Sequence record: KY555144.1
Reading direction: 5' to 3' (one strand)
DNA length: 64,000 nucleotides
The notes under the pieces were generated by a model. That model saw nothing but the letters and a program-made list of their open reading frames with translations, did no database searches and had not been told where the DNA came from. Numbering within the stretch: the stretch's first letter is position 1; each line of letters begins with the position of its first letter. The position numbers were made by a program, and so were the translations under genes. Of the stretch, positions 1 to 59,210 are shown one piece after another.

Positions 1-2970
1 GACCTGAAGGACGCCACGGCGAACTTCAAGAAGGACCTGGAGCCGCTCAACTTCAACGACCTCTTCAAGCGCGCCTCGGCCCTGGCTGATGGCAGCTTCG
101 CACGCACCGCCGCCGCGTCCAAGCCGGGCGGCGTGATGGCGCCGCCGGCCGTGGCGACCCAACAGACCGCCGCCACCATCAAGACCGTCATGGCCTCGAT
201 GGGCGATCGCGTGTACGCGACGGCTGGTCAGCACCTCGGACAGACCGAGGCCAAGGATGCGGCGTCGCTGCAAGCCTACTTCAAGGCCAACGGCGTCACC
301 ATCGACCCCAAGAAGCTCTCCTGGTGCGCGGCCTTCGTCAACGCGGTCCTGGCCCAGAACGGGCTCTCGGGCTCGGGCTCGCTGGCGGCTTCGTCCTTCA
401 AGGACTATGGCGACGAGGTCTCGCGCACTGACGCCCGCAAGGGTGACATCGTCGTCCTCAAGCCCCAGGCGGCGGGCGCCACCGGTCACGTCGGCTTCCT
501 CGACGGCTTCGACCGTCAAGGCAACGTGCGGGTGCTGGGCGGCAACCAAGGCGCGGCCGGTGGTGGCGGCGTCAACGTCTCGACCTTCGCCTCCAATCAG
601 GTCGTCTCCTTCCGCCGCACGGGCAGCGGCGGGGCCTCCAACTTCCTGGGCGGCGGCATCACCGAGGCCCAGGGCGAAGAAGGCGGCTCGCGCTACGAGC
701 GCCGGATGAACGCCTTCAAGGCGCTCGGGACGATCACCGGCCAAGCCTCGCCGGCCGCCGACGCCCTGGCCGACTACCAAGGCAACCTCGAAAAGCTGCG
801 CGACATCATCGTCTCGGAAGAGAAGCTGATGAAGGACGTCGGAGGCGACGGCCAGTCGTTCTTCAACAAGACGAACCTGGAAGCCCTGGTCGCCGCCCAG
901 AAGAAGTGGAACCGCTCGATCGTCGAGGCGCTCAACCCGATCGCCAAGGAAGCCCGGAGCCTCTCCGAGGCCAACGACGTCCTGCAACTGCGCGCCAAGG
1001 GCCTGTCGCAGGAAGCCGACTGGCAAGAGCGCCTGACCGAACTGCGCAACTCCGGCATCAATGTCGACCTGATGCAGGACGAGGCCAAGTGGACCCAGTA
1101 CCTGAACGAGTTGAAGAAGCAGGGCCTGGAGATCGACGTCAAGGCCCTGCAACTGAAGCCGGACGAACTGCGCTACCAGCAAGGCCGCGCCGAGGCGCTC
1201 CAGGCTGAACTCGACCTGACCAAGGCGCTGAATGACGCCAAGCTGGCGGGCATCGCCCGCACCGGCTCCAGCTACGACCGCACTCTGTCGGGCCTCGTCG
1301 CCGGCAAGGGCCGCGACGGCGAGACGCTCGATCAGACCCGCCAGCGTCTGGCGGGGTCGGTCGGCAGCGACGGCCGCAACGCGCTGGAGGCCCTGCAAGA
1401 GCAGGCCGGCGTGATGGAAGGCTCGCGCATGGCCGACGTCAAGGCCAGCATGCAGTCGCAGCTTGAGATCATGCGCGAGAGCGCGCGCCTCAACAACACC
1501 CAGCGCGGCATCTACGACGACTACCGCAACATCCTGGGCGAACTGCTGAACAAGCAGGGCGCCTCGCTGAAGGAACTGCTGGACTCGGCCGACGAGGAGA
1601 CCAAACGTCTCGCCCAGTCGTTCGTCCGCGCCAAGGCGGACTTTGAAAACCCGCCCGGCTTCCAGAAGTGGGCCGACTCCCTGGAACCGCTGGACAAGCG
1701 CCTCCAGGACATCAAGGCCAACTTCCTCGACAACTTCTCCGGCGGCATCACCGATGCGCTGCTGGGTGAGAAGGTCGACTGGAAGGCGATGCTGCACGAC
1801 ACCTTCAAGCAGATGCTGCGCGCCCAGGTCGATGAGGGTCTGAAGAGCCTCACCTACAAGCTGCTCGGCCAGGGTGGCGACCAGGGCGCGGCCCAAACCC
1901 CCGAAGCCCAGGCGCTGGTCTCGGCGGCCGATGTCCAATTGCAGGCCGGCAACAGCCTGCAACAAGCCGCCGCGAGCCTGATGCAGGCGGCTCAGACCAC
2001 CGCGACCGCCGGCGCGGGCGGCGGCCTGGGCGTGATGACGGGCGGACCCGCGATGGGCGGCCTCGGCAGTCTCCTGGGCGGGGGCGGCGCCATGGGTGGT
2101 GGCGGCGGCCTCGGCGCGCTGGCCGGCGTCCTGGGCGGCGGCGACGGCACGGCGACCAACCCGTTCTCGATCGCCGACTCCATTCTCAAGCCCCTGGTCG
2201 TCGACCAGACCGGCGGACCGGGCTTCCAGGCGGCGGGCGCGGCGCTCCAGGGCCTGAACATCACCCCGCCGGGCGGCGGCGGTTTCCTGTCGGGCCTGGG
2301 CTCGATGTTCCAAGGCGGCCTGGGCTCGATGCTGCAAGGCGCCCTGAGCTTCGCCGGTCCGCTGCTGGGCGGCCTGCTGACGGGCGGCAAGAAGAGCCCC
2401 AAGACGCCGGCGAGCTACCGCATGCCGGGCGGCGTCATCGGGCAGGCGAGCACCAACAGCGTCTCGGGCCGCGTGGTTGGCCCCAAGCAAAACCTGATCG
2501 GCTCTCTGGCGAACCTGGGCTTCCAGTTGTTCGCGGGCGGCATGGGCGGCGGCGGCGGCCTGATGAGCATGTTCGGCATGGGCGGCGCTGGCGGCGCGGG
2601 AAGCTTCATTGGCTTCAAGGAAGGCGGCCTGACGGGCGCGCCGGTCAACCGTTATACCGTCTCCTCGCTGGGCTCGATGTTCGCCAACGCTCCGCACTAT
2701 GCCGAGGGCACCAGCAACACCAAGCTGGCCAACGGCGGCATGCCGGCGATCGTCCACCCGGACGAGGCGGTGATCCCGCTGTCGCGTGGCCGCAACGTCC
2801 CGGTGGAACTGAAGGGCGCCGGCGGCGGAAGCTCGACCACCGTGGTCTCGCCGATCACCGTCTACGCCAACGACGTCGATAGCTTCCGTCCGGCCCAGGC
2901 GCAGATCGCCCGCAAGCAGAACCGCACCCTGCGCCGCGCGGCCTTGCGCAACGCCTCGATGGTCAACTAG
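1..2970 (+). CDS. Tail tape measure protein, C-terminal part (5' end outside window), with TIGR02594-type peptidoglycan hydrolase domain
   Basis: Frame is open from base 1. WCAAFVN...KGDIVV...GHVGF...VLGGNQ motif near the start, long helical region, Gly-rich C-terminus; lies directly upstream of the DUF2460 gene. Confidence 0.85.
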   Translation, partial: DLKDATANFKKDLEPLNFNDLFKRASALADGSFARTAAASKPGGVMAPPAVATQQTAATIKTVMASMGDRVYATAGQHLGQTEAKDAASLQAYFKANGVTIDPKKLSWCAAFVNAVLAQNGLSGSGSLAASSFKDYGDEVSRTDARKGDIVVLKPQAAGATGHVGFLDGFDRQGNVRVLGGNQGAAGGGGVNVSTFASNQVVSFRRTGSGGASNFLGGGITEAQGEEGGSRYERRMNAFKALGTITGQASPAADALADYQGNLEKLRDIIVSEEKLMKDVGGDGQSFFNKTNLEALVAAQKKWNRSIVEALNPIAKEARSLSEANDVLQLRAKGLSQEADWQERLTELRNSGINVDLMQDEAKWTQYLNELKKQGLEIDVKALQLKPDELRYQQGRAEALQAELDLTKALNDAKLAGIARTGSSYDRTLSGLVAGKGRDGETLDQTRQRLAGSVGSDGRNALEALQEQAGVMEGSRMADVKASMQSQLEIMRESARLNNTQRGIYDDYRNILGELLNKQGASLKELLDSADEETKRLAQSFVRAKADFENPPGFQKWADSLEPLDKRLQDIKANFLDNFSGGITDALLGEKVDWKAMLHDTFKQMLRAQVDEGLKSLTYKLLGQGGDQGAAQTPEAQALVSAADVQLQAGNSLQQAAASLMQAAQTTATAGAGGGLGVMTGGPAMGGLGSLLGGGGAMGGGGGLGALAGVLGGGDGTATNPFSIADSILKPLVVDQTGGPGFQAAGAALQGLNITPPGGGGFLSGLGSMFQGGLGSMLQGALSFAGPLLGGLLTGGKKSPKTPASYRMPGGVIGQASTNSVSGRVVGPKQNLIGSLANLGFQLFAGGMGGGGGLMSMFGMGGAGGAGSFIGFKEGGLTGAPVNRYTVSSLGSMFANAPHYAEGTSNTKLANGGMPAIVHPDEAVIPLSRGRNVPVELKGAGGGSSTTVVSPITVYANDVDSFRPAQAQIARKQNRTLRRAALRNASMVN

Positions 2971-2985
2971 CTGTCACCCACGACA

Positions 2986-3000
2986 GTCGTGAATCTTGAC
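2986..3000 (+). promoter_or_regulatory. Recurring promoter motif GTCGTGAATCTTGAC (GANTC abutting a TTGAC -35 box)
   Basis: Exact motif 54 bp before the 3054 start; ATGGTTAA (reverse of TTAACCAT) at 3040-3047. Confidence 0.7.
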
Positions 3001-3053
3001 GTTCCTGGATGATCGTGGCATCCAGGGACACCTCCTTTCATGGTTAATGCCCG

Positions 3054-3704
3054 ATGCCGAGCTTCCACGACGTCCTGTTCCCCGAGACCATCAGCTACGG
3101 CTCGTCCGGTGGTCCGAAGTTCAAGACCACGATCTTCCAGGCCGACAGCGGCTTTGAGCAGCGCAACAAGGACTGGAGCGACATCCGCTGCGAGTACGAT
3201 GTCGCCCAGTCGATCCGCTCGACCGAGGACATGGACGAGCTTCGCGCCTTCTTCATGGCCCGCAACGGCCGCGCCCACGGTTTCCGCTACAAGGACTGGG
3301 GCGACTTCCGCCTCAAGAACCAGTTGATCGGCGTCGGCGACGGCCTCACCAAGGTCTTCCAGATCGTCAAGACCTATACCAGTGTCGCCCACGACGGCAC
3401 CGAGTACACCTACACCCGCACGATCCGCAAGCCCAAGTGGGACTCGATCGCCGGCGTCAAGGTCGGCGCCGTGGTCCAGGTCGCCCCGACCAACTACGAG
3501 GTCGACTATTCGACCGGCCTGATGACCTTCGTCACCGCGCCGCCGGCCGACGCCCCGGTCACCATTGGCCTGGGCGAGTTCCACGTCCCCGTCCGCTTCG
3601 ACACCGACTTCATGGACGTCACCCAGGAGTTCTGGATGCGCGAGACGTGGCCCAACATCCCGATCGTCGAAATCCGTGACTGGCAAGAGGCCCTGACGCC
3701 GTGA
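3054..3704 (+). CDS. DUF2460/TIGR02217 distal tail protein (GTA-like)
   Basis: FHDVLFP...YGSSGGPKFKT...SGFEQRN...FFMARNGRAHGFRYKDW...FHVPVRFDTD signature. Confidence 0.9.
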   Translation: MPSFHDVLFPETISYGSSGGPKFKTTIFQADSGFEQRNKDWSDIRCEYDVAQSIRSTEDMDELRAFFMARNGRAHGFRYKDWGDFRLKNQLIGVGDGLTKVFQIVKTYTSVAHDGTEYTYTRTIRKPKWDSIAGVKVGAVVQVAPTNYEVDYSTGLMTFVTAPPADAPVTIGLGEFHVPVRFDTDFMDVTQEFWMRETWPNIPIVEIRDWQEALTP

Positions 3705-21343: not shown

Positions 21344-24151
21344 TTACCCCTCACATGCCAAGCAGTCGGACGAGGCCGTCGGATTGAGGGCCAGCATCGC
21401 GGCCTCCTCGGCGGAGCCCTCGGTCACGGGCTCCTCGGCGAACTCGATCTTCTTGCGCTCGACCTTGGCGTTGGTGTTCTCGGCCCGCTTGGGGGTCGAC
21501 GAGCGCAGGTAGTAGAACGACTTGACGCCGGCGCCCTCGCCCCAGCCCAGGAAGTGGAGTTCCGAGAGGTACTCGGCGTCCGCGTCGTGAGGCACGAAGA
21601 CGTTCAGGGACTGGCCCTGACAGATCGACTTGGAGCGGTCGACCGCCAGGGTCACGACCCAACGCTGATCCATCTCGCGGGCGGTCCGGTAGACCTTCAG
21701 GAGATGCAGGCGCTCGGCTTCCGGCATGGTCACGCCGTGCTCGGCCAGGAACTCGGGCGTGAAGTGCTGGATCGAACCCTCGGCCGCGACGATCGACTTC
21801 CAGACCGCCTCGGTGTTCAGGCCCAGTTCGCCCAGGCGCTTCTTCAGCCAGCGGTTCTTGACGGCGAACGAGCCCGACAGGGTCTTGTGCAGGAAGGTGT
21901 TGGCCGGGATCGGCTCGATCGACGGCGAGGTGCCCCCGCAGAGGATCGAGGACGAGGCGTTGGGCGCCACGGCCAGCTTGTGGGCGAACCGCTCGCCCGT
22001 GCCTTCCATGTCCGGCGCCTCGCCGCGCTCCTTGCCCAGCAGCAGGGAAGCCGCGTCGGCCTGCTTGCGCATGTGGGCGAACAGTTCCAGGTTCAGCCGG
22101 CGGGCGGCGTGACTCTCGAACGGGATGTCCAGCATCTGGAGCAGCGAGTGGAAGCCGAGCAGGCCCAGGCCCACCGACCGTTCGCGCACGGCGCTGTAGG
22201 CGGCGCGGTGCATCTCGTCCGGCGCGTTGTCGATGAACACCTGGAGGCAGTTGTCCAGCATGCGCAGCAGGTCTTCGATGAAGGTCGGGTGATCCCGCCA
22301 CTCCGGCCACTTCTCGGCGTTGACGCTGGAGAGGCAGCAGACGGCGGTCCGCATCTTGCCGAAGATGTCGCGGCCCGAGCCCAGCATGATCTCCGAGCAG
22401 TTGCCCGTCAGATAGCCGTTGAAGACCAGACGGTGGCGCAGGGGCTCGGTCGCGCAGAAGACGTCAGCCTTGTGCGCGAGCGGATGGACGTCGGCGACCG
22501 TCGCCGCCAGGATCGAGGCCACCCCGATCGCGGCGTCGCGCGGCTCGATCGCGTGGGCCAGGACGATGCCGCGATCCGACAGATAGGCCACATCCCACTC
22601 GGCGAGCGAGAAGGCGCTGACCGTGTCGGTCAGGCGGATGCGCGGGTGCAGGCCGGACTCGATGGCCATGAGGCGCATCTGGCGGATCAGGTCGACGTCG
22701 GTCGAGCCCACGGTCAGCCAACGCACGCCGTCGATCTCGACCCACTCGCCGGCCGCGTCCAGGGCGCCGGCCAGCCACGTCAGGCGGCGTTCGACGGTCC
22801 AGGCGAATGGCACCACGCCGGGATTGATCACCTGCGGGTCAAAGCGCAGGGTCGTGCCGTGCTCGTCGCCTTCCAGGTTGGTCGACAGCGTCGACAGGCG
22901 CTTGAGCACCTCGCCCGGCAGGCTCGCAGGCACGAAGGCCGACAGCCGGTTTTTGTCGTCGAAGCCGGCGAAGGTCGTCCACCCGGCGGCATAGGCCTGC
23001 TCGATCGGCGGCGTCGCCTCGGCCAGCCCCTCGATCACCGGCGCCTGGGCCTTGGCCAGCACGGTCCCGAGCTTCAGTTCGCCGGCCCGCACCTCCACGC
23101 CGTCCTGGGTGTAGAACTTGTGGTAGGGGGTGCAGTCGAGATAGTCGCCGTCCTCGAACCAGACGCGCACCAGCGAGGCCTTCTCGTCGGTGGGGTTGGT
23201 CTGCTGGATCAGGACGCGGCTGAATTCCTCGCCGTTCCAGACGTCGTGGTATTCGCCTTTCAGGGCCTCGATCGGCAGGTGGCCGTTGCGGGTCAGGATT
23301 TCGGTCTCGCCGGTCACGCAGAGGTTCGACTGGCGGACCTTGAGGCCGAGCTTCTTCTGCGCCTCGGGGAAGTGGCGGTTGGAGGTGTCGATGAAGTGGA
23401 TGTAGGGCTCGCCCGTCTGCATCCGCGTCTCGATCAGCAGGCGCCACAGTTCGCGCGCCCGCTCAACGCGGATCACCTCGCCGGTCTTGGGCGAGCGCAG
23501 GGCGAACTCGGTGTCGTCGCGCACCGCGATCATGAACTCGTCGGTGACGTTGACGGCGTTGTGCAGGTTGGTGATCTTGCGGTTCTGGTCGCCGCCGGTA
23601 GGCTTGCGGGCCGTGATGAACTCGCGGATTTCCGGGTGGCTAATGTCCAGATAGACGGCGTTGGAGCCCCGGCGCGTGCCGCCTTGGCTGACGGCGAGAA
23701 TCAGGCGATCGTCCACCGCCATGAACGGGATCACGCCGGTCGACTGCGAACCCTTCGAGGTCTTCTCGCCCAGGCCGCGCAGGGCGCCGTAATAGGAGCC
23801 GATGCCGCCGCCCATCGACGAGAGCCAGATGACCTCGTCATAGTGCTCGGAGATCGACTCGCGGCTGTCCTCGATCGCGGTGAGGAAGCAGGAGATCGGC
23901 AGGCCGCGCGCGGACCCGCCGTTCGACAGCAGGGGCGTGGCGAACATGAACCAGAGGTTCGAGACATAGTCGTAGAGCCGCTGGCCGTGCTCGGCGTCAT
24001 CCGCGAAGGCCGCACTCGCGCGCGCGAAGGCCTCCTGGGGCGAGCTTTCCCCAGGCAGCAGATAGCGTTCACGGAGGGTCTGAAGGGTGAAGTCGTCGAG
24101 CAGGGCGTCGCGGGTGAGATCGATCTTGATTTCGGAGGGTGCGACAGCCAT
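21344..24151 (-). CDS. nrdA: Ribonucleotide reductase class I alpha subunit containing an intein
   Basis: FATPLLSNGG, PISCF, QSNL|C...N|CSEI, VAPNASSS, C-terminal CLACEG; start taken at the ATG at 24151. Confidence 0.93.
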   Translation of the reverse strand: MAVAPSEIKIDLTRDALLDDFTLQTLRERYLLPGESSPQEAFARASAAFADDAEHGQRLYDYVSNLWFMFATPLLSNGGSARGLPISCFLTAIEDSRESISEHYDEVIWLSSMGGGIGSYYGALRGLGEKTSKGSQSTGVIPFMAVDDRLILAVSQGGTRRGSNAVYLDISHPEIREFITARKPTGGDQNRKITNLHNAVNVTDEFMIAVRDDTEFALRSPKTGEVIRVERARELWRLLIETRMQTGEPYIHFIDTSNRHFPEAQKKLGLKVRQSNLCVTGETEILTRNGHLPIEALKGEYHDVWNGEEFSRVLIQQTNPTDEKASLVRVWFEDGDYLDCTPYHKFYTQDGVEVRAGELKLGTVLAKAQAPVIEGLAEATPPIEQAYAAGWTTFAGFDDKNRLSAFVPASLPGEVLKRLSTLSTNLEGDEHGTTLRFDPQVINPGVVPFAWTVERRLTWLAGALDAAGEWVEIDGVRWLTVGSTDVDLIRQMRLMAIESGLHPRIRLTDTVSAFSLAEWDVAYLSDRGIVLAHAIEPRDAAIGVASILAATVADVHPLAHKADVFCATEPLRHRLVFNGYLTGNCSEIMLGSGRDIFGKMRTAVCCLSSVNAEKWPEWRDHPTFIEDLLRMLDNCLQVFIDNAPDEMHRAAYSAVRERSVGLGLLGFHSLLQMLDIPFESHAARRLNLELFAHMRKQADAASLLLGKERGEAPDMEGTGERFAHKLAVAPNASSSILCGGTSPSIEPIPANTFLHKTLSGSFAVKNRWLKKRLGELGLNTEAVWKSIVAAEGSIQHFTPEFLAEHGVTMPEAERLHLLKVYRTAREMDQRWVVTLAVDRSKSICQGQSLNVFVPHDADAEYLSELHFLGWGEGAGVKSFYYLRSSTPKRAENTNAKVERKKIEFAEEPVTEGSAEEAAMLALNPTASSDCLACEG
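22400..23320 (-). mobile_element. Intein (307 aa) with degenerate LAGLIDADG domain, inserted at the catalytic Cys of NrdA
   Basis: Starts CVTGETEIL, ends HRLVFNGYLTGN before Cys+1; contains WLAGALDAAG block-E-like motif. Confidence 0.9.
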
Positions 24152-38306: not shown

Positions 38307-38997
38307 AGAGAAGCTCCGGTTTGGCGCTGACCGGCTTGGACCAATCCCAGACGTACCAAGCGTAGGCGAAGCGCGGGGCGCCCTTGGTGCCGGCGATCCA
38401 GCGGGGGCGGTGACGAAGGGTGACCTTCGCGGTGAAAGCGGGGTGATCGAACAGGTCCGCGCGCGAGCGCGCCGCGTCCCATTCGTGGCGGCAGAGGAAG
38501 GCCACGAGGCCCTGGTCGGCCTCCATCAGGTCCAGCGCGTGGCGCGCGGCGCGCTCGGCGTCCTTGCCGTAGGGCGGGTTGGTGATGATCGCGTCCGGAC
38601 GCGGCGGCAACGGCGTGCTCTTGCGCTCCTCGCCCTTCTCGTCGACAACCGTCTCGGGCCGGACCTTCAGCGCGCCCAGGCGGTCGAGGTCGGCCGGCGT
38701 CAGCTTGAAGAAGTCCTCGACCGCGTCGACCTCGAAGCCCTCGTAGCGGTGGATGTCCGTGGCGAGGACTTCCTGCACGAAGGGCTTGAGCGGCGTGGCG
38801 ATGGCGCCGTTGCCGGCGAAGGGCTCCCAGGCGAAGAACGGGGCGAAATCATCGCCCAGGGCCTCGATCAGGGCGTCGAAGGCCGGCCGAGGAGTCGGGT
38901 AAAAGTCCAGCGGGGTCCTGGCATATCCGGAGGCGCCCAGCATGGAGGGGTCTTTGCGACCAGCATCGGAGAGAGACATGGTCGTGAGGGATGTCAT
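38296..38997 (-). CDS. Amino (N6-adenine-type) DNA methyltransferase
   Basis: DFYPTP, WEPFAGNGAI (motif I), IITNPPY (motif IV). Confidence 0.82.
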   Translation of the reverse strand: MTSLTTMSLSDAGRKDPSMLGASGYARTPLDFYPTPRPAFDALIEALGDDFAPFFAWEPFAGNGAIATPLKPFVQEVLATDIHRYEGFEVDAVEDFFKLTPADLDRLGALKVRPETVVDEKGEERKSTPLPPRPDAIITNPPYGKDAERAARHALDLMEADQGLVAFLCRHEWDAARSRADLFDHPAFTAKVTLRHRPRWIAGTKGAPRFAYAWYVWDWSKPVSAKPELLYAG

Positions 38998-39054
38998 GGT
39001 TAACGAAGGGTGTCAAGATTCACGACATTGACTGTCGTGACGCAGCACGTTAAT
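38996..39054. promoter_or_regulatory. Divergent promoter region
   Basis: Minus-strand motif at 39012-39027, TTAACCAT at 38996-39003, inverted repeat TCACGACA/TGTCGTGA, and plus-strand TTGACT-N17-TAATCA (-35 at 39028). Confidence 0.65.
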
Positions 39055-39059
39055 CAGGA

Positions 39060-39690
39060 GGCAACGGGCCGTCCTTCTGCATTAGCCCCGCCGCCGCGCC
39101 TTCCAGGCGGCACGGGCCGGGACGGTGGTTGGTGACGAGCAGGCCGAGGCAGCGGCGGGCGAGTCGAAGGAGAACCCGGCGAGCGGCGGAAGGCGTCGTT
39201 GACGCCCTCGGACTCGACAAGCACGTGGTGATGCCGGAAATCACCGCGATCGCGCGGACGTCTGGACGTTGCTAGGCGTAAGGCAGGCCTGCCGAGAAGT
39301 GGAAACGGCCGGGGCGGGCGGGACTTGATCTCGTCCGCCTTTCCGCCTAAGCTTCCCTCATTGCAGGCGCAGCACCGCCCTTCGCTAACGGCCCCGAGGG
39401 GTACGCAAGGGCTAGAAGCCTTGCCTGGGACAGGACTGCCTCTGATCCAGGAACGCCCTGGGCCGCGTAGCGCCCATGACGCGAACGCCGGCCGAGAATG
39501 GGCGACTAGGCGTGACGGCGGCCAGAGGCCGCAGCGACATTCCAAGCTCGATAGAGCGATCGGCGGGCCGGGGCGAAAGCCCTGTTTCGAGAGCCAGGGC
39601 AACCCGTCATAGGTCCTGGTCGGGCGACGAGGCAGCAAGTCCCGCGAACGGAGCCTCTGAGGTGGCGTCACCAAGATGCAGCAGACGCAA
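39060..39690 (+). ncRNA. Candidate ~630-nt highly structured ncRNA, family unknown
   Basis: Own promoter and terminator; no protein-like ORF; 5'/3' closing helix (CTGCAT 39077-39082 with ATGCAG 39676-39681); many local stems and GNRA loops. Confidence 0.6.
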
Positions 39691-39721
39691 AAAGGCCCCG
39701 ATCGCGAGATCGGGGCCTTTT
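39689..39721. terminator. Bidirectional intrinsic terminator
   Basis: AAAAA-GGCCCCGATC-GCGA-GATCGGGGCC-TTTT. Confidence 0.9.
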
Positions 39722-39726
39722 CATGT

Positions 39727-39815
39727 TGGAGCTTCGGGAGGGACTCGAACCCTCATAGGTGTTCCCACCAGCAGAGATTTGCAATCCCGCGCCTAACCTC
39801 TCAGTCCACCGAAGC
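39727..39815 (-). tRNA. tRNA-Cys(GCA) with long variable arm
   Basis: GCTTCGG/CCGAAGC acceptor, U73, encoded CCA, TT-GCA-AA loop, GAGGG-TTCGAGT-CCCTC T-arm, V-arm GGTG-GGAA-CACC. Confidence 0.88.
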
Positions 39816-39862
39816 ACAAAAGGACCTCGACGCCCGAAGGCCCGAGGTCCGATCCGTAACCA

Positions 39863-39990
39863 GGGGAGGGCCGTAGCTGTCCCCTGACCCTGAACGACAG
39901 GTGGCGGGCTTGGTCGTCATCCCGTCAGGCTCGCGGCGCCGCTCGCCTGAACCGCCGATATGCCACGAGGGCAGTGATCCGCAGGTCCCC
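39863..39990 (+). ncRNA. 6S RNA-like molecule
   Basis: Rod with ~20-nt central bubble: GGGGA/TCCCC, CTGTCC/GGGCAG, GGCGGGC/GCTCGCC; GTCCCCTGACC and CCTGAACC resemble recalled 6S motifs; G-U pairs favour the + strand. Confidence 0.5.
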
Positions 39991-39999
39991 ACAAATAGC

Positions 40000-40034
40000 A
40001 AAAAGGCCACGATCCGCGAGGACCGTGGCCTTTT
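40000..40034. terminator. Bidirectional intrinsic terminator between the 6S-like and GOLLD-like RNAs
   Basis: AAAAA-GGCCACG...CGTGGCC-TTTT. Confidence 0.85.
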
Positions 40035-40040
40035 CGTTTT

Positions 40041-40913
40041 CCGATGGGCTGAGACTACACCCATCAGCAATCCCGCTTCGAGGATTATTCCCCAGGTGCG
40101 ACCCCAGGTATTCCCTCGACGTCCACCAGACCCCTTGCGGTAGTCCAGTCCGAGATCATCGCCGCCGTTCTTGCGCACCCCGAAGGGATTGCGGGTCTGG
40201 CGTTTGACCCATCATGGCGAACTACTCGACAGTTCCTTCCCCGCTGGGCTTGCGACCCACTCACCGGCGCTAACCGGCTGACGAAGCTCTTCCTATCGAC
40301 ACCTCGCGGGCTTGCGACCCTTGAGATGACTCCGTTACCCGAAGGCCGGAGCATTTGGCGACTTACGTCCGCCACTGGACCAGTCTTTGCGTTTTTCATC
40401 GAAGCGGGGATTGAACCCGCGACCGACAGCTTAAGAGGCTGTTGCACTACCACTGTGCTATTCGCAAACCCACCAAGACGTGCTGGTCCAGTTGTTCCCA
40501 GAGCTTTTGACCCCGGAAATGCAACACGCCTCATATCTTTCGCCTTGCGGGCTACTCGACTGCTCTTCAGGACTCCGTCTCCCCCAACCTTTCGGCCAGG
40601 ATGCCCAGCACCCCTCGAACTGAAGCAAAGCTCTTCACCGCGAAGTGTCGAACCCTGCAACCCAAACGGTTATCCGTACTCCCTAGACACGCTTGCACGG
40701 GATAGTCCGCTTGCGACGGACTGGCGGTTAAAGCCTCGGAGTTACCCCGGCCCCGCCTTGTCTCCCACGGTCTTCAGGTCTATCCCCTTTTGCAAGAGGC
40801 GGCCAGCTTCCCAGCCCGGACCCGTCGGCTTCCTCTGTCCTCTTGCGAGGTCGGGCGGCCTATGGGAGACCGTCCCTGTCACCCCGTCGCCGGGGCTTTC
40901 GTCAGAAGCGACG
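40041..40913 (-). ncRNA. GOLLD-like giant structured RNA (~870 nt)
   Basis: Promoter TTGACG-N15-GCTAGA upstream and terminator downstream; about ten GCAA tetraloop hairpins plus GAAA/UUCG loops on the minus strand; central tRNA-like domain; segments resembling recalled GOLLD consensus. Confidence 0.6.
40396..40467 (-). tRNA. tRNA-Lys(CTT)-like domain with defective acceptor stem, embedded in the GOLLD-like RNA
   Basis: Good D-arm, ACAGC-CT-CTT-AA-GCTGT anticodon arm, GCGGG-TTCAATC-CCCGC T-arm; only 4 Watson-Crick acceptor pairs and no CCA. Confidence 0.7.
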
Positions 40914-40920
40914 ATGACGT

Positions 40921-41030
40921 TCTAGCGACAGCCCACGTCGTCGTCAACGACTTTTTCCGTCTCGATGTCGAATTTTTTCGACAGTCGTGGATGACGACAG
41001 TGCTTGACATTCTCGTAAGCCCATGCTAGG
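40921..41030. promoter_or_regulatory. Divergent Caulobacter-type sigma70 promoters (GOLLD-like RNA on -, tmRNA on +)
   Basis: Minus: TTGACG (40942-40947)-N15-GCTAGA. Plus: TTGACA (41004-41009)-N15-GCTAGG. Confidence 0.75.
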
Positions 41031-41036
41031 TGTCGG

Positions 41037-41406
41037 AAATCGTTGTAATTCGGACAACGGAACTGGCGGCAAGACAGGGGTGCGAATCCCCTCGCCTCCA
41101 CCATCGACGCCCGGCGCTGGGAGTACGCGACTCCTGGGCAGGGAGTGTTACCCTGGCGGGCTGCGGCCCGAGCCAAAGGTAGCCGGGCGTCGTTGATGGG
41201 GGCGACTAGCTTTCGATTGGCGCTCGGGACTGAAAGACGCAACGGTGGGTGACCTCCACATCGGCTTGCCGGTGATCGGGTCAGGCAACAGTAAATGTCG
41301 CCGACAATGACAACGACGTCGTGGCTTTCGCCTCGGCTCGTGAAGCCATCGCCGCCTAATAAGCGGTAGAGGAGCCCGCCGGGAGCTTGGCAACAGAATC
41401 CCGGCA
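41037..41406 (+). ncRNA. ssrA: Two-piece circularly permuted tmRNA (alphaproteobacterial type)
   Basis: Acceptor piece ends CGCCTCC-A-CCA at 41103; coding piece starts GGGGGCG at 41198, giving a 7-bp stem with G3-U70; tag frame (V)ADNDNDVVAFASAREAIAA followed by two stops (41297-41362); GGCAACAGAA near the 3' end. Confidence 0.9.
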
Positions 41407-41540
41407 ACCCCCTTTCGCAGGCGGGAACACCAACAGGCGATCTGTCGGGCGACCGATTTCCGATCCGTGTTCCCGTCTTCGAAAGGTGGTCAGGCCTACC
41501 CTCTTGGTGTGCTATCCAAGGGTCTGGCCACTTTACAGAA

Positions 41541-41619
41541 CGCGGGGTAGAGGAGTCCGGTTGTCCTCGTCTGGCTCATAACCAGGAGATCGTGGGTTCA
41601 AATCCCACTCCCGCTCCCA
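41541..41619 (+). tRNA. tRNA-Met(CAT), partly initiator-like
   Basis: C1xU72 mismatch, CT-CAT-AA loop, GTGGG-TTCAAAT-CCCAC T-arm, encoded CCA; only two G-C pairs next to the anticodon loop. Confidence 0.85.
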
Positions 41620-41900
41620 ATGCGAACGCCGGCTGTTGAGAACGACGGCGTGACAAGCTCGGAGAGAACGAGCACTCCAGTCCGGGGTATGAGGCCGGAC
41701 TAGCGGACGCCGTAGCGATTGCAGGCGTGACACCCGGAGATAGCGGGACCGGCTTTCCGAGCCGCATGCTCGGCGCGTAAGACCGCAGGCCTCGGCCATC
41801 GGGCAGTGTCAGGGGATGAGGCTAGTCCTCGGCTAACCACCTAGCGGTGAAGCTAGGGCATGCGGTTCGGAAAGCTGGGTTCGCGGTTCGTCCGCTACGA
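41620..41900 (+). ncRNA. Structured RNA domain of unknown class, directly 5' of the permuted tRNA-like element
   Basis: Stems ACGCCG/CGGCGT, GCTCG/CGAGC, AGTCCGG/CCGGACT, CCTAGC/GCTAGG and long-range CCGCATGC/GCATGCGG. Confidence 0.5.
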
Positions 41901-41977
41901 GATGGAGATGTCGCCGGTTCGAGTCCGGCAGGTCCCCCAAAAGGAGGCCTTAGCTCAGTCGGTAGAGCGCTCCTATC
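41901..41977 (+). ncRNA. Circularly permuted tRNA-like element (3' half upstream of 5' half)
   Basis: T-arm and acceptor 3' strand with CCA at 41913-41939, then acceptor 5' strand and D-arm at 41943-41969; acceptor and anticodon stems both pair between the halves. Confidence 0.55.
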
Positions 41978-41985
41978 CCACCTTT

Positions 41986-42070
41986 GGTACGGTGGCTCGA
42001 CAGGTAAGGCATCGGCCTCATAAGCCGAGGGTTCGTCCCAATCCTGGTTCAAATCCAGGTCGTACCTCCA
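41986..42070 (+). tRNA. tRNA with CAT anticodon (Met or Ile2), long variable arm and U73
   Basis: GGTACGG/TCGTACC acceptor, TCGGC-CT-CAT-AA-GCCGA, 14-nt variable region, CCTGG-TTCAAAT-CCAGG, encoded CCA. Confidence 0.88.
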
Positions 42071-42144
42071 AATCGACGCTTGACCCCAGGCCGCAGGCTG
42101 CTAAGCTTCCCCGGTCGGGATCGTCCCGCGTCCTTTCCAAGGTC

Positions 42145-42175
42145 AAGCCCCCGGAGCTTCGCTTCGGGGGCTTTT
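42145..42175. terminator. Intrinsic terminator closing the tmRNA/tRNA transcript
   Basis: AAGCCCCC...GGGGGCTT-TT. Confidence 0.8.
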
Positions 42176-42528
42176 CAGTTCTTGACCACCCGCAGGCGCC
42201 GGGCCTCGATGGCGCGCTCCTCCGCCGCCACGCGCGAGACGTCTTGCAGGTGCGCCTTGGCGATCAGGTCGGGCGCGCCCACGGCCCGGAAGGGCACCTT
42301 GACGGAGAGGTCGACATAGCGCCGCAAGAGAGGCTCGAATTCCAGACCCCGCGCCTGGGCGATCCGCGACAATGCGCCGGCGACGATCGCCACGACCAGG
42401 ACGTTGGTCGGGGTCTCCTTGGTCAGGGTCCAGATGCCCGGTATCGATTGTCCAGGATGGAGTTCCTGCCGCGACACGTCATCGGCGGCGGCGCGGAAGA
42501 GGTTCTCGTAAGGGACGTTTTCGAGCAT
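42175..42528 (-). CDS. Hypothetical protein (117 aa)
   Basis: Normal codon usage; converges on the RNA island terminator. Confidence 0.6.
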   Translation of the reverse strand: MLENVPYENLFRAAADDVSRQELHPGQSIPGIWTLTKETPTNVLVVAIVAGALSRIAQARGLEFEPLLRRYVDLSVKVPFRAVGAPDLIAKAHLQDVSRVAAEERAIEARRLRVVKN

Positions 42529-46186: not shown

Positions 46187-46665
46187 CAGGAGGCCTTTGC
46201 GGCGGTGGTGGTCTTGTACTTCTTGGCGTGGCGCAGGCCCTTCCACGAGGCCTTGTAGCCGTCGAGGTTGCGCCAGCCGCTACAGCAGGGCGAGCCGCAG
46301 GAGCAGCGCATGTAGGCCTTCTCGGCGTGCCCGCGATTGACCAGGACCTTCATCGCCGAGGTGTTGTAGTCCTCCGGCGCCGGGAAGACCTTCTCGGGCT
46401 CGGCCGCCATCTCGATCAGCAGCCGCTTGGGGCCGTCGTTCTGACATTTGCGGCAGTAGGCGACCTCGTCATAGGCCAGGGCCTCGGCTTCTAGCTCGGC
46501 CTGGGCCTTGACCTCCTCGGCGAACTCCTCGTAGGTCTGCGCACCGCTCAGATAGCGCGAGACCTCGTGGGTCTTCGGGATCGCCTTGGCGCAGTCCCGG
46601 CAGTGGACGGTGTACTGCGCCGTCCAGGTAGCCCGTTCGATATGGTCGAGGTCGTAGGATGTCAC
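46186..46665 (-). CDS. Hypothetical Cys-rich protein (159 aa)
   Basis: CRDC, CRKC, CSCGSPCC; translationally coupled to both neighbours. Confidence 0.6.
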   Translation of the reverse strand: MTSYDLDHIERATWTAQYTVHCRDCAKAIPKTHEVSRYLSGAQTYEEFAEEVKAQAELEAEALAYDEVAYCRKCQNDGPKRLLIEMAAEPEKVFPAPEDYNTSAMKVLVNRGHAEKAYMRCSCGSPCCSGWRNLDGYKASWKGLRHAKKYKTTTAAKAS

Positions 46666-47111
46666 AGGTGCGGGGCCAGTTCGCGGTCCATGCGGTCGAG
46701 TTCCCCCCGCTTATGGAGTTCGGCGACCCGGTGCAGGGCGATCAGCTTCTGCTCGATATAGGTCATGGTCGCCGGCGAGCGGGTCGGGAGTTCCGACAGG
46801 CCCGTGCCGATGCCGTCCGAGGGCCAGACCACGATGCCGCCCTTCTTGACGTGGGTGAAGAGCCGGCGGAAGTCCTCGTCGATCGTCCGGCACTGGGCGT
46901 CGACCGCCACCGGATCGTCGGAGAAGAAGTCGGTGTCGTGCATGCCCGGCGTGCGCTTGGTCGCCACGCCCACGGCGTTGGGCTCGCCACGCATGTGGCC
47001 GGCCTGCCCGCCCATGCCCTTGCGGATCATGTTGTCCCCAAAGACGTAGAGCACGTCGGAATTGCGGCGCAGGTCTTCGCGGAAGATGCGGTGCTGGTAG
47101 ATGAGGGGCAT
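46662..47111 (-). CDS. Conserved phage protein, possibly macrodomain-like
   Basis: LYVFGDN...GMGGQA...GEPNAVGVATK...GIGTG pattern. Confidence 0.45.
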   Translation of the reverse strand: MPLIYQHRIFREDLRRNSDVLYVFGDNMIRKGMGGQAGHMRGEPNAVGVATKRTPGMHDTDFFSDDPVAVDAQCRTIDEDFRRLFTHVKKGGIVVWPSDGIGTGLSELPTRSPATMTYIEQKLIALHRVAELHKRGELDRMDRELAPHL

Positions 47112-58739: not shown

Positions 58740-59210
58740 ATGTCCCTGATCGAGAAGCTCAACAACGACGCCCTGGCCGCCCGCAAGGCGGCGATGCGCA
58801 AGGAAGCCGGCGGCGAGCACGCCGTTCTCCTGGCGACGGTCGCGGCGGACGCCGCCATGATCGCCAAGAACGACCGCCAGAACCCCGGCCGCGACGTCAC
58901 GGACGAGGACGTCGTCGCCACGCTGAAGAAGCACATCGGCGGCATCGACACCACCCTGGCGGAACTGACCAAGCGCGGCCGGTCCGAGGAGGAGCAGTCG
59001 CGCTTCATCGTCGAGCGCCGGCGCCTGGAGGCCTATCTGCCCCAGACCCTGTCGGGCGGCGATCTGACCGACGCGATCCACGCCACGGCCGCCAAGCTCG
59101 GCGTCGACCTGCACGTCAAGAGCACCAAGGCGATCGTCGCCGATCTGCAAGAGCAGTTCCCTGGCCAGATTGATTCTTCGGAAGTCGCGCGCTATCTTAA
59201 GAACGTCTGA
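58740..59210 (+). CDS. GatB/YqeY domain protein
   Basis: MSLIEKL...AAMRK...VTDEDVVATLKKHI...LEAYLPQTLS. Confidence 0.75.
   Translation: MSLIEKLNNDALAARKAAMRKEAGGEHAVLLATVAADAAMIAKNDRQNPGRDVTDEDVVATLKKHIGGIDTTLAELTKRGRSEEEQSRFIVERRRLEAYLPQTLSGGDLTDAIHATAAKLGVDLHVKSTKAIVADLQEQFPGQIDSSEVARYLKNV

Follow-up and report, generated by a model that had tools for sequence, protein, structure and literature searches.

Caulobacter phages of the phiCbK-like group carry, within their replication and nucleotide-metabolism module, an island of about 3.2 kb (39005-42180) that is packed with RNA genes and in which coding signal is absent. The island is described here from a 64-kb window, meaning the whole analysed stretch of 64,000 nucleotides from sequence record KY555144.1, which across the interval of the finding is 100% identical to the Caulobacter phages Ccr5 and CcrKarma (Karma below). 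Over the island its identity to phiCbK, Magneto, Swift and others is 97-98%. The source group is placed in the genus Shapirovirus, subfamily Dolichocephalovirinae. Positions are those of the window, a Karma position being converted by subtracting 62,810, unless a locus of a relative is named. The contents include transfer RNAs (tRNAs), a two-piece transfer-messenger RNA (tmRNA), a GOLLD RNA and a set of unclassified structured RNAs, among which a module of 60-70 nt recurs (Table 1). An earlier note, made from the letters of the sequence alone, had proposed both that this interval was an RNA-only island and that it held RNAs outside the known families; dense RNA genes without coding signal, and structured RNAs that match no Rfam family, are indeed what it contains.

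To the left of the island lie T5 A1-like and DNA-methylase genes, which end at 38910 in the Karma annotation, and to the right gp131, gp132 and a helicase gene, starting at 42175; both sets are on the minus strand. These flanks are kept in Shapirovirus, Poindextervirus, Colossusvirus and the Brevundimonas phages Bajun, Kabachok and Gurke, all of which also have in common the order tRNA-Cys, tmRNA, tRNA-Met, spacer RNA, tRNA-Met. Judged by gene order, the island is syntenic among the Dolichocephalovirinae phages examined, between the DNA-methylase and helicase genes.

Table 1. Features of the island, in window coordinates; the last six rows give coding sequences annotated over RNA in relatives, in the coordinates of each locus. 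ORF, open reading frame; CDS, coding sequence; E, expectation value.
Feature	Position	Strand	Details
Promoter P1	39014..39058	+	sigma73-type, TTGACT at 39028 then GTTAAT; pattern match
gp130	39054-39635	-	sole annotated CDS inside the island; 206-aa ORF
Small-RNA unit 1	39062..39320	+	ends in degenerate module copy GGACGUC..GGCGUAAG, 39256-39300
Candidate promoter P2	39312..39352	+	pattern match at 39325; reading uncertain
Small-RNA unit 2	39358..39543	+	3' end is the best module copy, 39471-39543; covariance model match
Module copy	39471-39543	+	83.5 bits, E = 1.7e-22
Unit 3 or 3' tail	39544..39721	+	ends in bidirectional terminator 39689-39721; blocks and terminator kept in alignment
Terminator loci	39689-39721, 39822-39843, 39999-40036, 42157-42169
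tRNA-Cys (GCA)	39727-39815	-	89 nt; ARAGORN; Rfam tRNA 33.8 bits
tRNA-Cys leader or small RNA ('6S-like rod')	39816..39998	-	upstream of tRNA-Cys
GOLLD, full predicted transcript	39999..40913	-	about 915 nt; own promoter, strong terminator 39999-40036
GOLLD, Rfam-modelled part	40046-40532	-	RF02032, 171.2 bits against gathering 150, model 1-416, E = 2.5e-46
GOLLD tRNA-like domain	40395-40468	-	ARAGORN and Rfam; annotated tRNA-Lys (CUU); L002 1940-2013, L003 2168-2241
GOLLD 5' domain	40533-40913	-	variable domain upstream of the conserved 3' domain
GOLLD promoter	40921..40949 (sequence from 40947, ending 40919)	-	TTGACG, 15-nt spacer, GCTAGAAC; pattern match
tmRNA promoter	41004..41032	+	TTGACA, 15-nt spacer, GCTAGGTG; pattern match and sequence reading
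Two-piece (permuted) tmRNA	41011-41450 (ARAGORN), 41041-41359 (RF04321)	+	71.9 bits against gathering 47
tmRNA parts		+	acceptor piece ends CCA 41103; coding piece from near 41197; tag ORF 41297-41362
tRNA-Met (CAU)	41541-41619	+	ARAGORN; Rfam 48.4 bits
Module copy	41612-41684	+	22.6 bits; X RNA
X RNA	41620..41882	+	about 265 nt, 7 helices
Module copy	41695-41758	+	12.9 bits, E = 0.08; X RNA
Permuted tRNA-like element	about 41900-41977	+	T arm, closed acceptor-like hairpin, D arm, closing stem
Second CAU tRNA	41986-42070	+	85 nt; ARAGORN (Met), Rfam 47.4 bits
Right-end promoter	from 42080	+	TTGACC..GCTAAGCT; pattern match
Right-end small RNA	42112-42176	+	~65 nt; terminator shared with convergent gp131; fold z = -3.78
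Rogue gp125	L004 1623-2036
RBC8 'DNA transfer protein'	L012 1781-2194
Colossus gp163	L006 2936-3145
Unnamed CDS	L010 3406-3531
BL57_146c	L003 2515-2721
BL57_145	L003 870-998

Absence of protein-coding sequence

The genes flanking the island have the frame signature of a 66%-GC genome, with a GC content of 0.90-0.98 at third codon positions (GC3) and near 0.45 at second positions (GC2). No frame bias in GC3 was found in any 180-nt window between 39010 and 42150. Most GenBank records of the phage group nevertheless label part of the island as a hypothetical protein (gp130, gp128 or gp126 in Karma, Ccr5, phiCbK, Ccr10 and Magneto), and an ORF of 206 aa is present. Were this a genuine protein gene, the island would be shorter than is claimed here, but several observations make that very improbable. 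As well as being without GC3 periodicity, the gp130 frame has variable sites spread evenly over codon positions 1/2/3, at 17/24/24 among four close relatives and 112/111/120 once three more distant phages are added, whereas the control methylase gene (6/4/25 and 18/13/60 by the same counts) and gp131 (24/14/54) behave as coding. Indels of 1 nt at 39126, 39238 and 39534 separate close relatives, and the product of the ORF has no match in a Pfam search. The gene would also sit downstream of a terminator without a promoter of its own, while the strand opposite it carries an invariant promoter, a conserved module and a terminator; it is left unannotated in RBC57 and BL10. We conclude from these comparisons that gp130 is a wrong annotation in GenBank of a part of the island that is really non-coding.

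In relatives, too, CDSs are annotated over the X RNA, over the small-RNA array or over the 5' domain of GOLLD (Table 1), and these are probably spurious in the same way.

A repeated RNA module

The region containing gp130 (39005-39725) is homologous along its whole length in Shapirovirus, BL57, Rogue and BL10. Its plus strand folds better than shuffled sequence (z = -2.46), whereas its minus strand does not (z = +0.59). The earlier note had described a single RNA of about 630 nt here; non-coding sequence on the plus strand, opposite gp130, is real, but it is better taken for a tandem of two or three small-RNA units than for a single molecule. In the alignment of unit 1 (Shapirovirus, BL57, Rogue and BL10) indels are not multiples of three and changes preserve the hairpins. 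At the position of candidate promoter P2 there is a covarying hairpin with the loop CUUGA(U/C), followed by CCTAAGCT, the stem of which changes from GGGAC/GTCC to GGGAG/CTCCC in Rogue and BL57.

When a 706-nt query was compared by blastn, the core at 39471-39543 was the only part with matches in Colossus, CcrPW, Bajun and the 350-kb Brevundimonas phages, and a single genome often had several of them. The core comprises, in order, yUGAnGnGAACGCC, a loop of 12-26 nt, GGCGUGAC and a 4-7-bp hairpin whose loop is AGA or resembles GAGAGAA; in outline, GAACGCC...GGCGUGAC forms a stem, after which comes a hairpin whose loop is purine-rich. Reduced to motifs, its elements are an ACGCC/GGCGU stem, GUGAC and the purine-loop hairpin. 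This module was traced first with a regular expression and second with a covariance model (CM R1). The former found 28 distinct copies from 15 sources, with about 13 different hairpin stems in a fixed place. All 42 matches to the latter with E < 0.1 are on the plus strand and within the island, the best match in the remainder of the window having E = 0.58; unit 1 ends in a degenerate copy, at 39256. Both helices covary: compensatory change was observed in 10 of the 11 pairs, and pairing was 87.5%, as against 30-49% in slid controls, and none of 500 shuffles reached the observed values; the secondary structure of the module is conserved.

In Colossus, CcrPW, Kabachok, Gurke and one metagenome contig, the module closes units of 180-250 nt, in none of which was a U-tract terminator found. 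Within 0-10 nt of each such module comes the next TTGAC promoter or, for the last unit, tRNA-Cys. Colossus (L006 1250-2130), CcrPW (L008 600-2130) and Kabachok (L139 4700-5600) each have three or four tandem units consisting of a promoter, an RNA of ~200 nt and a module, situated upstream of a plus-strand tRNA-Cys, and the small-RNA family has therefore expanded in these larger relatives.

Rfam 15, with its ribozymes, riboswitches and other families, gave no match over the module copies, and a three-copy stretch of Colossus gave nothing at E <= 10. A search of IMG/VR for wider relatives returned known isolates only, and a scan of metagenomes one Colossus-like contig; a pattern search of bacterial contigs was too loose, with at least 120 chance matches in coding sequence, and is uninformative on absence from bacteria. 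Self-cleaving ribozymes found beside phage tRNAs, the theta ribozymes related to that of hepatitis delta virus (HDV) and the hammerheads, share with the module a position adjacent to tRNAs or at unit boundaries and strongly conserved unpaired nucleotides, but no Rfam ribozyme match covers it. For an HDV-like fold a conserved P2 strand would have to follow the hairpin, where no conservation is seen, and the hammerhead core is not present. Similarly, a pseudoknot between 16 nt upstream and the internal loop of the module (CGCCCAU/AUGGGCG in Ccr5) was rejected, 20 copies giving 4.25 as compared with 4.03 for shuffled loops.

We think that the module is a common recognition and end-defining element for one processing or stabilising factor. 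This role is favoured because the module sits at the ends of units that have no terminator and beside tRNAs. The odds seem to us about even that the GAACGCC...GGCGUGAC stem and purine-loop hairpin represent an undescribed class of phage structured RNA, shared by the small RNAs and the X RNA of the Dolichocephalovirinae.

The X RNA

Immediately following tRNA-Met is an RNA, here termed X RNA, that starts 2-6 nt past the CCA of the tRNA with one copy of the module and has a second copy inside. A 26-bp helix (41749-41775 with 41856-41882) encloses a variable apical domain and the invariant hairpin GUCAGGGGAUGAGGCUAGUCC. Across seven relatives, assessed with RNAalifold and pair counts, 97% of cells are paired, as against 28-44% in slid controls, with eight compensatory pairs and none of 500 shuffles doing as well. 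What the earlier note listed as a 270-nt domain is thus a real RNA with a conserved secondary structure.

The spacer of the Bajun tmRNA (L007 3010-3045, inside the annotated tmRNA at 2884-3316) contains the X RNA apical hairpin, GUCAGGGGAUGAGGCUAGUCCCCGGC. Modules therefore move between RNAs, a conserved hairpin being reused in different host RNAs.

The tRNA-Cys leader

Upstream of tRNA-Cys, the earlier note had seen a rod resembling 6S RNA. The 6S model (RF00013) has no match at E <= 5 on either strand of 38800-42400, and the candidate was rejected for 39816-40045 on this ground and because the sequence forms separate hairpins, not a rod with a central bubble, with a z-score of -1.3 for minimum free energy on the transcribed strand. 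The likeness extends only to a non-coding stretch of roughly 170 nt with hairpins. As nothing 6S-like is present in the island, the suggestion that the phage takes over transcription by way of 6S has no basis and falls with it.

What lies there instead is conserved in Ccr5, BL57, Rogue, BL10 and Bajun and contains an invariant GGGACAGCUA block. The consensus fold of these five relatives, conserved like those of the module and the X RNA, has four or five hairpins, with compensatory changes in 17 of the 39 predicted pairs. The last hairpin (39822-39843) has a UUCG loop and covarying stems, precedes a U-tract; in all three genera it stops 6 nt short of tRNA-Cys. In Rogue, which is without GOLLD, the promoter TTGCGG..GCTATAAG precedes the leader. 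By its pattern of covariation the stretch is a genuine structured RNA, though not a 6S-like one, and represents a leader or a small RNA. Given the terminator-like hairpin before it, tRNA-Cys could come only from read-through, which suggests attenuation control; the leader hairpin could therefore attenuate expression of tRNA-Cys. Together, the repeated module, the X RNA and this leader are put forward as candidate new RNA families.

The tmRNA

The two-piece tmRNA, one of the elements proposed from the sequence by eye, was recovered by ARAGORN and by RF04321 above its gathering threshold, so that its identity is secure. Its acceptor stem can be read directly, GGGGGCG (41197-41203) pairing with CGCCUCC (41093-41099) ahead of ACCA at 41100-41103; both the alanine identity pair, G3.U70, and an encoded CCA are therefore present in the tmRNA. 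The tag given by ARAGORN is VADNDNDVVAFASAREAIAA, of 20 codons followed by two stop codons, and would be ADNDND...AIAA if the resume codon is GCC. It resembles the host tmRNA tag, which we take to be AANDNFAEEFAVAA.

The gene shares with the alphaproteobacterial two-piece tmRNAs (RF04321 / RF01849) an acceptor piece that precedes the coding piece, a T arm, CCA and G3.U70, and its tag ORF ends in AA with two stops, the gene form being as in the Caulobacter host (PMC11915505). It differs in being encoded by a phage and in having a longer tag (20 codons by ARAGORN) that ends AIAA, and it falls short of the older alpha_tmRNA model. The records of Karma, Ccr5 and phiCbK leave it out, although that of Bajun annotates it; a tmRNA has also been counted in phage Shash (PMC13459779). 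No smpB is among the annotated genes of the window.

The GOLLD RNA and its tRNA-like domain

GOLLD is an RNA class of phages and prophages (PMC12286853), found near phage tRNA islands and carrying tRNAs in its linker (PMC12286853, PMC6582537). The layout comprises a variable 5' domain, a linker that optionally includes a tRNA and a conserved 3' domain, and the env-38 representative self-assembles into a 14-mer cage (PMC12286853). The GOLLD-like RNA of ~870 nt that the earlier note suspected is a genuine member, matching RF02032 above gathering; BL57 scores 169.7 bits. It lies in a lytic phage genome, with tRNA-Cys 230 nt away and a tRNA-like domain in the linker. In addition to a full-length match to the model, it has in common with the family many GCAA-type loops and its phage-encoded position beside tRNA genes, as well as the tRNA-like insert in the linker and the variable 5' domain (PMC12286853, PMC6582537). 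It departs from the family in its high-GC alphaproteobacterial host and in an embedded tRNA with a 4-bp acceptor stem and a hypervariable anticodon loop. The 5' domain is near-invariant in Shapirovirus, with few compensatory changes in BL57. A literature search found no paper linking GOLLD with Caulobacter phages, and in the phiCbK genome paper Rfam gave no functional RNA other than tRNAs (PMC3556154).

The tRNA-like domain aligns to positions 4-67 only of the tRNA model, its acceptor stem therefore being 4 bp. Its body is identical in all relatives, and the anticodon loop differs at four of seven positions, being CUCUUAA in Ccr5, Karma and Magneto, CGUCCUA in phiCbK and Ccr10 and CAUCCUA in BL57. 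The Ccr5 loop is canonical, whereas those of phiCbK and BL57 are without U33 and purine 37. Because of the short acceptor stem and these losses in relatives, the embedded 'tRNA' probably has a structural role in GOLLD as a tRNA-like domain, and the GenBank labels of tRNA-Lys (CUU) and tRNA-Gly (UCC, no U33) are doubtful. The pseudo-tRNA of mycobacterial GOLLD has likewise been suggested to be a tRNA-like structural domain (PMC6582537). This domain, the repeated module and the ~65-nt terminal small RNA (42112-42176) had escaped the earlier note.

Phage tRNA islands with large ornate RNAs such as GOLLD and ROOL resemble this one in combining a tRNA cluster and a large structured RNA in a large phage genome (PMC12286853); the present island adds a tmRNA and a family of small RNAs with a module absent from Rfam 15. 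Its description as a phage copy of the host's housekeeping RNA toolkit holds in part: the tmRNA and tRNAs fit, whereas 6S does not, and GOLLD belongs to phages and prophages rather than to the housekeeping RNAs of the host (PMC12286853).

The tRNAs, a permuted tRNA-like element and the right end

All three tRNAs that had been proposed, tRNA-Cys, tRNA-Met and a second CAU tRNA, were confirmed by ARAGORN and Rfam. The first of these is a cloverleaf with an extra arm, having a long variable arm, U73 and an encoded CCA; the last folds with an extended variable arm and likewise has U73 and an encoded CCA. The tRNA-Met at 41541-41619 is initiator-like because of its C1xU72 mismatch. Both tRNA-Cys and the second CAU tRNA combine the long or extended variable arm with a tRNA-Ser-like D arm, a shape kept in Colossus, Bajun and Kabachok; class-II-shaped tRNAs with GCA or CAU anticodons are unusual. 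The tRNAs, the tmRNA and GOLLD are RNAs of known kinds, detected by standard tools and missing from the records.

The permuted tRNA-like element between the X RNA and the second CAU tRNA is real. Its match to YrlA is confined to the tRNA module, at positions 23-85 of the 114 in the model (RF02553), with 29.7 bits against a gathering threshold of 69 (E = 1e-4). The order of the permuted tRNA module and the conserved nucleotides are those of YrlA (PMC4201824), but the match is below gathering and the Ro60-binding part of the model is unmatched. The YrlA motif GNCGAA(N)G (PMC4201824) is absent from 41878-41985, and no Ro/TROVE (rsr) gene is among the annotated genes of the window, a survey covering the window and not the rest of the genome. 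By these comparisons the element is like the tRNA module of a Y RNA and does not qualify as a YrlA member. It forms an insertion of ~104 nt in Ccr5, Karma, phiCbK, Ccr10 and RBC57; BL57, Rogue, BL10 and RBC8 do not have it, and Magneto and Swift have other sequence in its place. Going by this distribution, it is a lineage-specific and recent insertion in one sub-lineage. The small RNA at the right end is conserved in BL57.

Promoters and terminators

A scan with an E. coli-type promoter found no site inside the island, its single match (42562-42535, minus strand) falling outside, and a Caulobacter-type pattern, TTGAC..N..GCTA, was used instead. This matched five times in the 3.2-kb island and nine times in the other 60.8 kb. 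The promoters proposed earlier have a counterpart in the five Caulobacter-type matches, in line with the count then given, and none in the E. coli-type scan. TTGACG and GCTAGAAC fit the sigma73 consensus of Caulobacter. The region of P1 includes a 40-nt block invariant in seven phages of three genera, and the GOLLD promoter is kept in BL57 as TTGACG..GCTACAAC. A terminator scan gave nine matches, against 3.3 expected, at four loci, the number of terminators that had been proposed.

Other genes of the window

A gene with a YqeY domain, which the earlier note had placed elsewhere in the window, exists at 58740-59210 on the plus strand (PF09424, 39.3 bits against a cut-off of 27). It is labelled 'tRNA amidotransferase domain protein' in Karma, lies 17 kb from the island and adjoins a helix-turn-helix (HTH) gene. 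A 149-aa protein encoded at 46662-47111 (minus strand), which has the placeholder tag 'CcrKarma_xxxxx' in Karma, has a strong match to DUF7831 (150 bits). The gene for the ribonucleotide reductase alpha subunit (21344-24151, minus strand) contains an intein according to the Karma annotation.

Interpretation

The reading we favour, to which we give a probability of about 0.8, is that of a phage stable-RNA gene island of three blocks, which the RNA polymerase of the host would transcribe from some five sigma73-type promoters, the role proposed for the module included. The first block, on the plus strand (39029-39721), would yield two or three small structured RNAs. The second, on the minus strand from 40949, would give GOLLD of ~915 nt, the structured leader ending in a terminator hairpin, and tRNA-Cys. 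The third, on the plus strand from 41004, would comprise the permuted tmRNA precursor, tRNA-Met, the X RNA, the YrlA-like module, the CAU tRNA and the ~65-nt small RNA. Polycistronic precursors would be cut by the tRNA-processing enzymes of the host, and the phage tRNAs may supplement decoding. With its G3.U70 pair, NDN motif and C-terminal AA, the tmRNA would act with an assumed host SmpB in rescuing stalled ribosomes and in tagging peptides for ClpXP, and GOLLD may self-assemble as described for its family.

The unclassified stretches could alternatively be leaders, spacers and trailers of tRNA, tmRNA and GOLLD precursors, with the conserved hairpins serving as processing signals rather than belonging to independent RNAs. 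Module copies do adjoin tRNAs, 2-6 nt downstream of tRNA-fMet and, in Colossus and CcrPW, 6 nt upstream of tRNA-Cys; the leader hairpin is 6 nt ahead of tRNA-Cys, and the apical hairpin of the X RNA recurs in the excised spacer of the Bajun tmRNA. Yet the first block has its own invariant promoter and terminator and no tRNA, Colossus-type phages have three or four tandem units of promoter, RNA and module, and the seven helices of the X RNA, with a 26-bp stem and compensatory changes, go far beyond the needs of a spacer; we regard this account as unlikely. It is no less unlikely, and no more so, that the island serves counter-defence, with spare or decoy tRNA-like RNAs and a spare tmRNA replacing or shielding host RNAs cut by anticodon nucleases or defence RNases. 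Anticodon nucleases such as PrrC, and also PARIS, target tRNA-Lys, and phages answer with variant tRNAs. The identical body of the GOLLD tRNA-like domain, with four of the seven anticodon-loop positions differing between sister phages (CUU of Lys type as against UCC), would suit such a role, as would the insertion of a second tRNA mimic in a single lineage. However, relaxed constraint would account for the missing U33 of phiCbK and BL57 as well as selection would, and tRNA-Cys and the CAU tRNAs are conserved in all genera, as plain decoding support predicts. As functions, tRNA supply, ribosome rescue and the replacement of RNAs cut by defence nucleases are all plausible, the hypervariable anticodon loop of the embedded tRNA-like domain being the one relevant hint.

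The module might instead act as DNA, providing sites for replication or transcription factors, in which case the region would be an origin or regulatory region of the replication module. The island lies between the methylase and A1-like genes and the helicase gene, and the module has an inverted repeat (ACGCC..GGCGT) and is often directly upstream of a -35 element. Such a role is improbable because the copies are all in one orientation, the spacing of the half-sites varies from 12 to 26 nt and the hairpin stems covary while the loops stay purine-rich; furthermore, the copies in the X RNA and before tRNA-Cys have no promoter after them.

Several points weigh against the stable-RNA reading itself. 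Its promoters, transcript ends and strands are predictions, and the accessible portion of the text and supplements of a paper on RNA-seq during phiCbK infection (PMC10688885) contains nothing on the island intervals. The covariation of the module is support rather than proof, because the alignment leans to the model to which it was fitted, and independent changes are few in the X RNA (seven sequences) and the leader (five), most relatives being closely related. The role of the module is a guess from its position, the analysis having identified neither a partner protein nor a cleavage site or tertiary motif. Nor is the content of the island uniform, since GOLLD is absent by model search from Rogue and BL10 and from the sister genus Poindextervirus, and scores 104 bits, below threshold, in Bajun.

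Implications

If the proposed RNA class is real, gp130, Rogue gp125, the RBC8 'DNA transfer protein' and Colossus gp163 are mis-annotated RNA arrays. In that case a protein of the host or the phage might dock on the module, or the module might form a 3' end that blocks exonucleases or a new self-processing element that splits RNA units without terminators. Work on the Caulobacter cell-cycle model has phiCbK and its relatives as its standard phages, and this group carries a GOLLD RNA and a two-piece tmRNA, a 'gene' that is non-coding and conserved structured RNAs outside the known families. In practical terms this yields annotation corrections for some 30 phage genomes. It also provides a tractable pair of host and phage for asking what role GOLLD has and why a lytic phage brings a ribosome-rescue RNA, and a route to the purpose of a new and strongly conserved RNA module.

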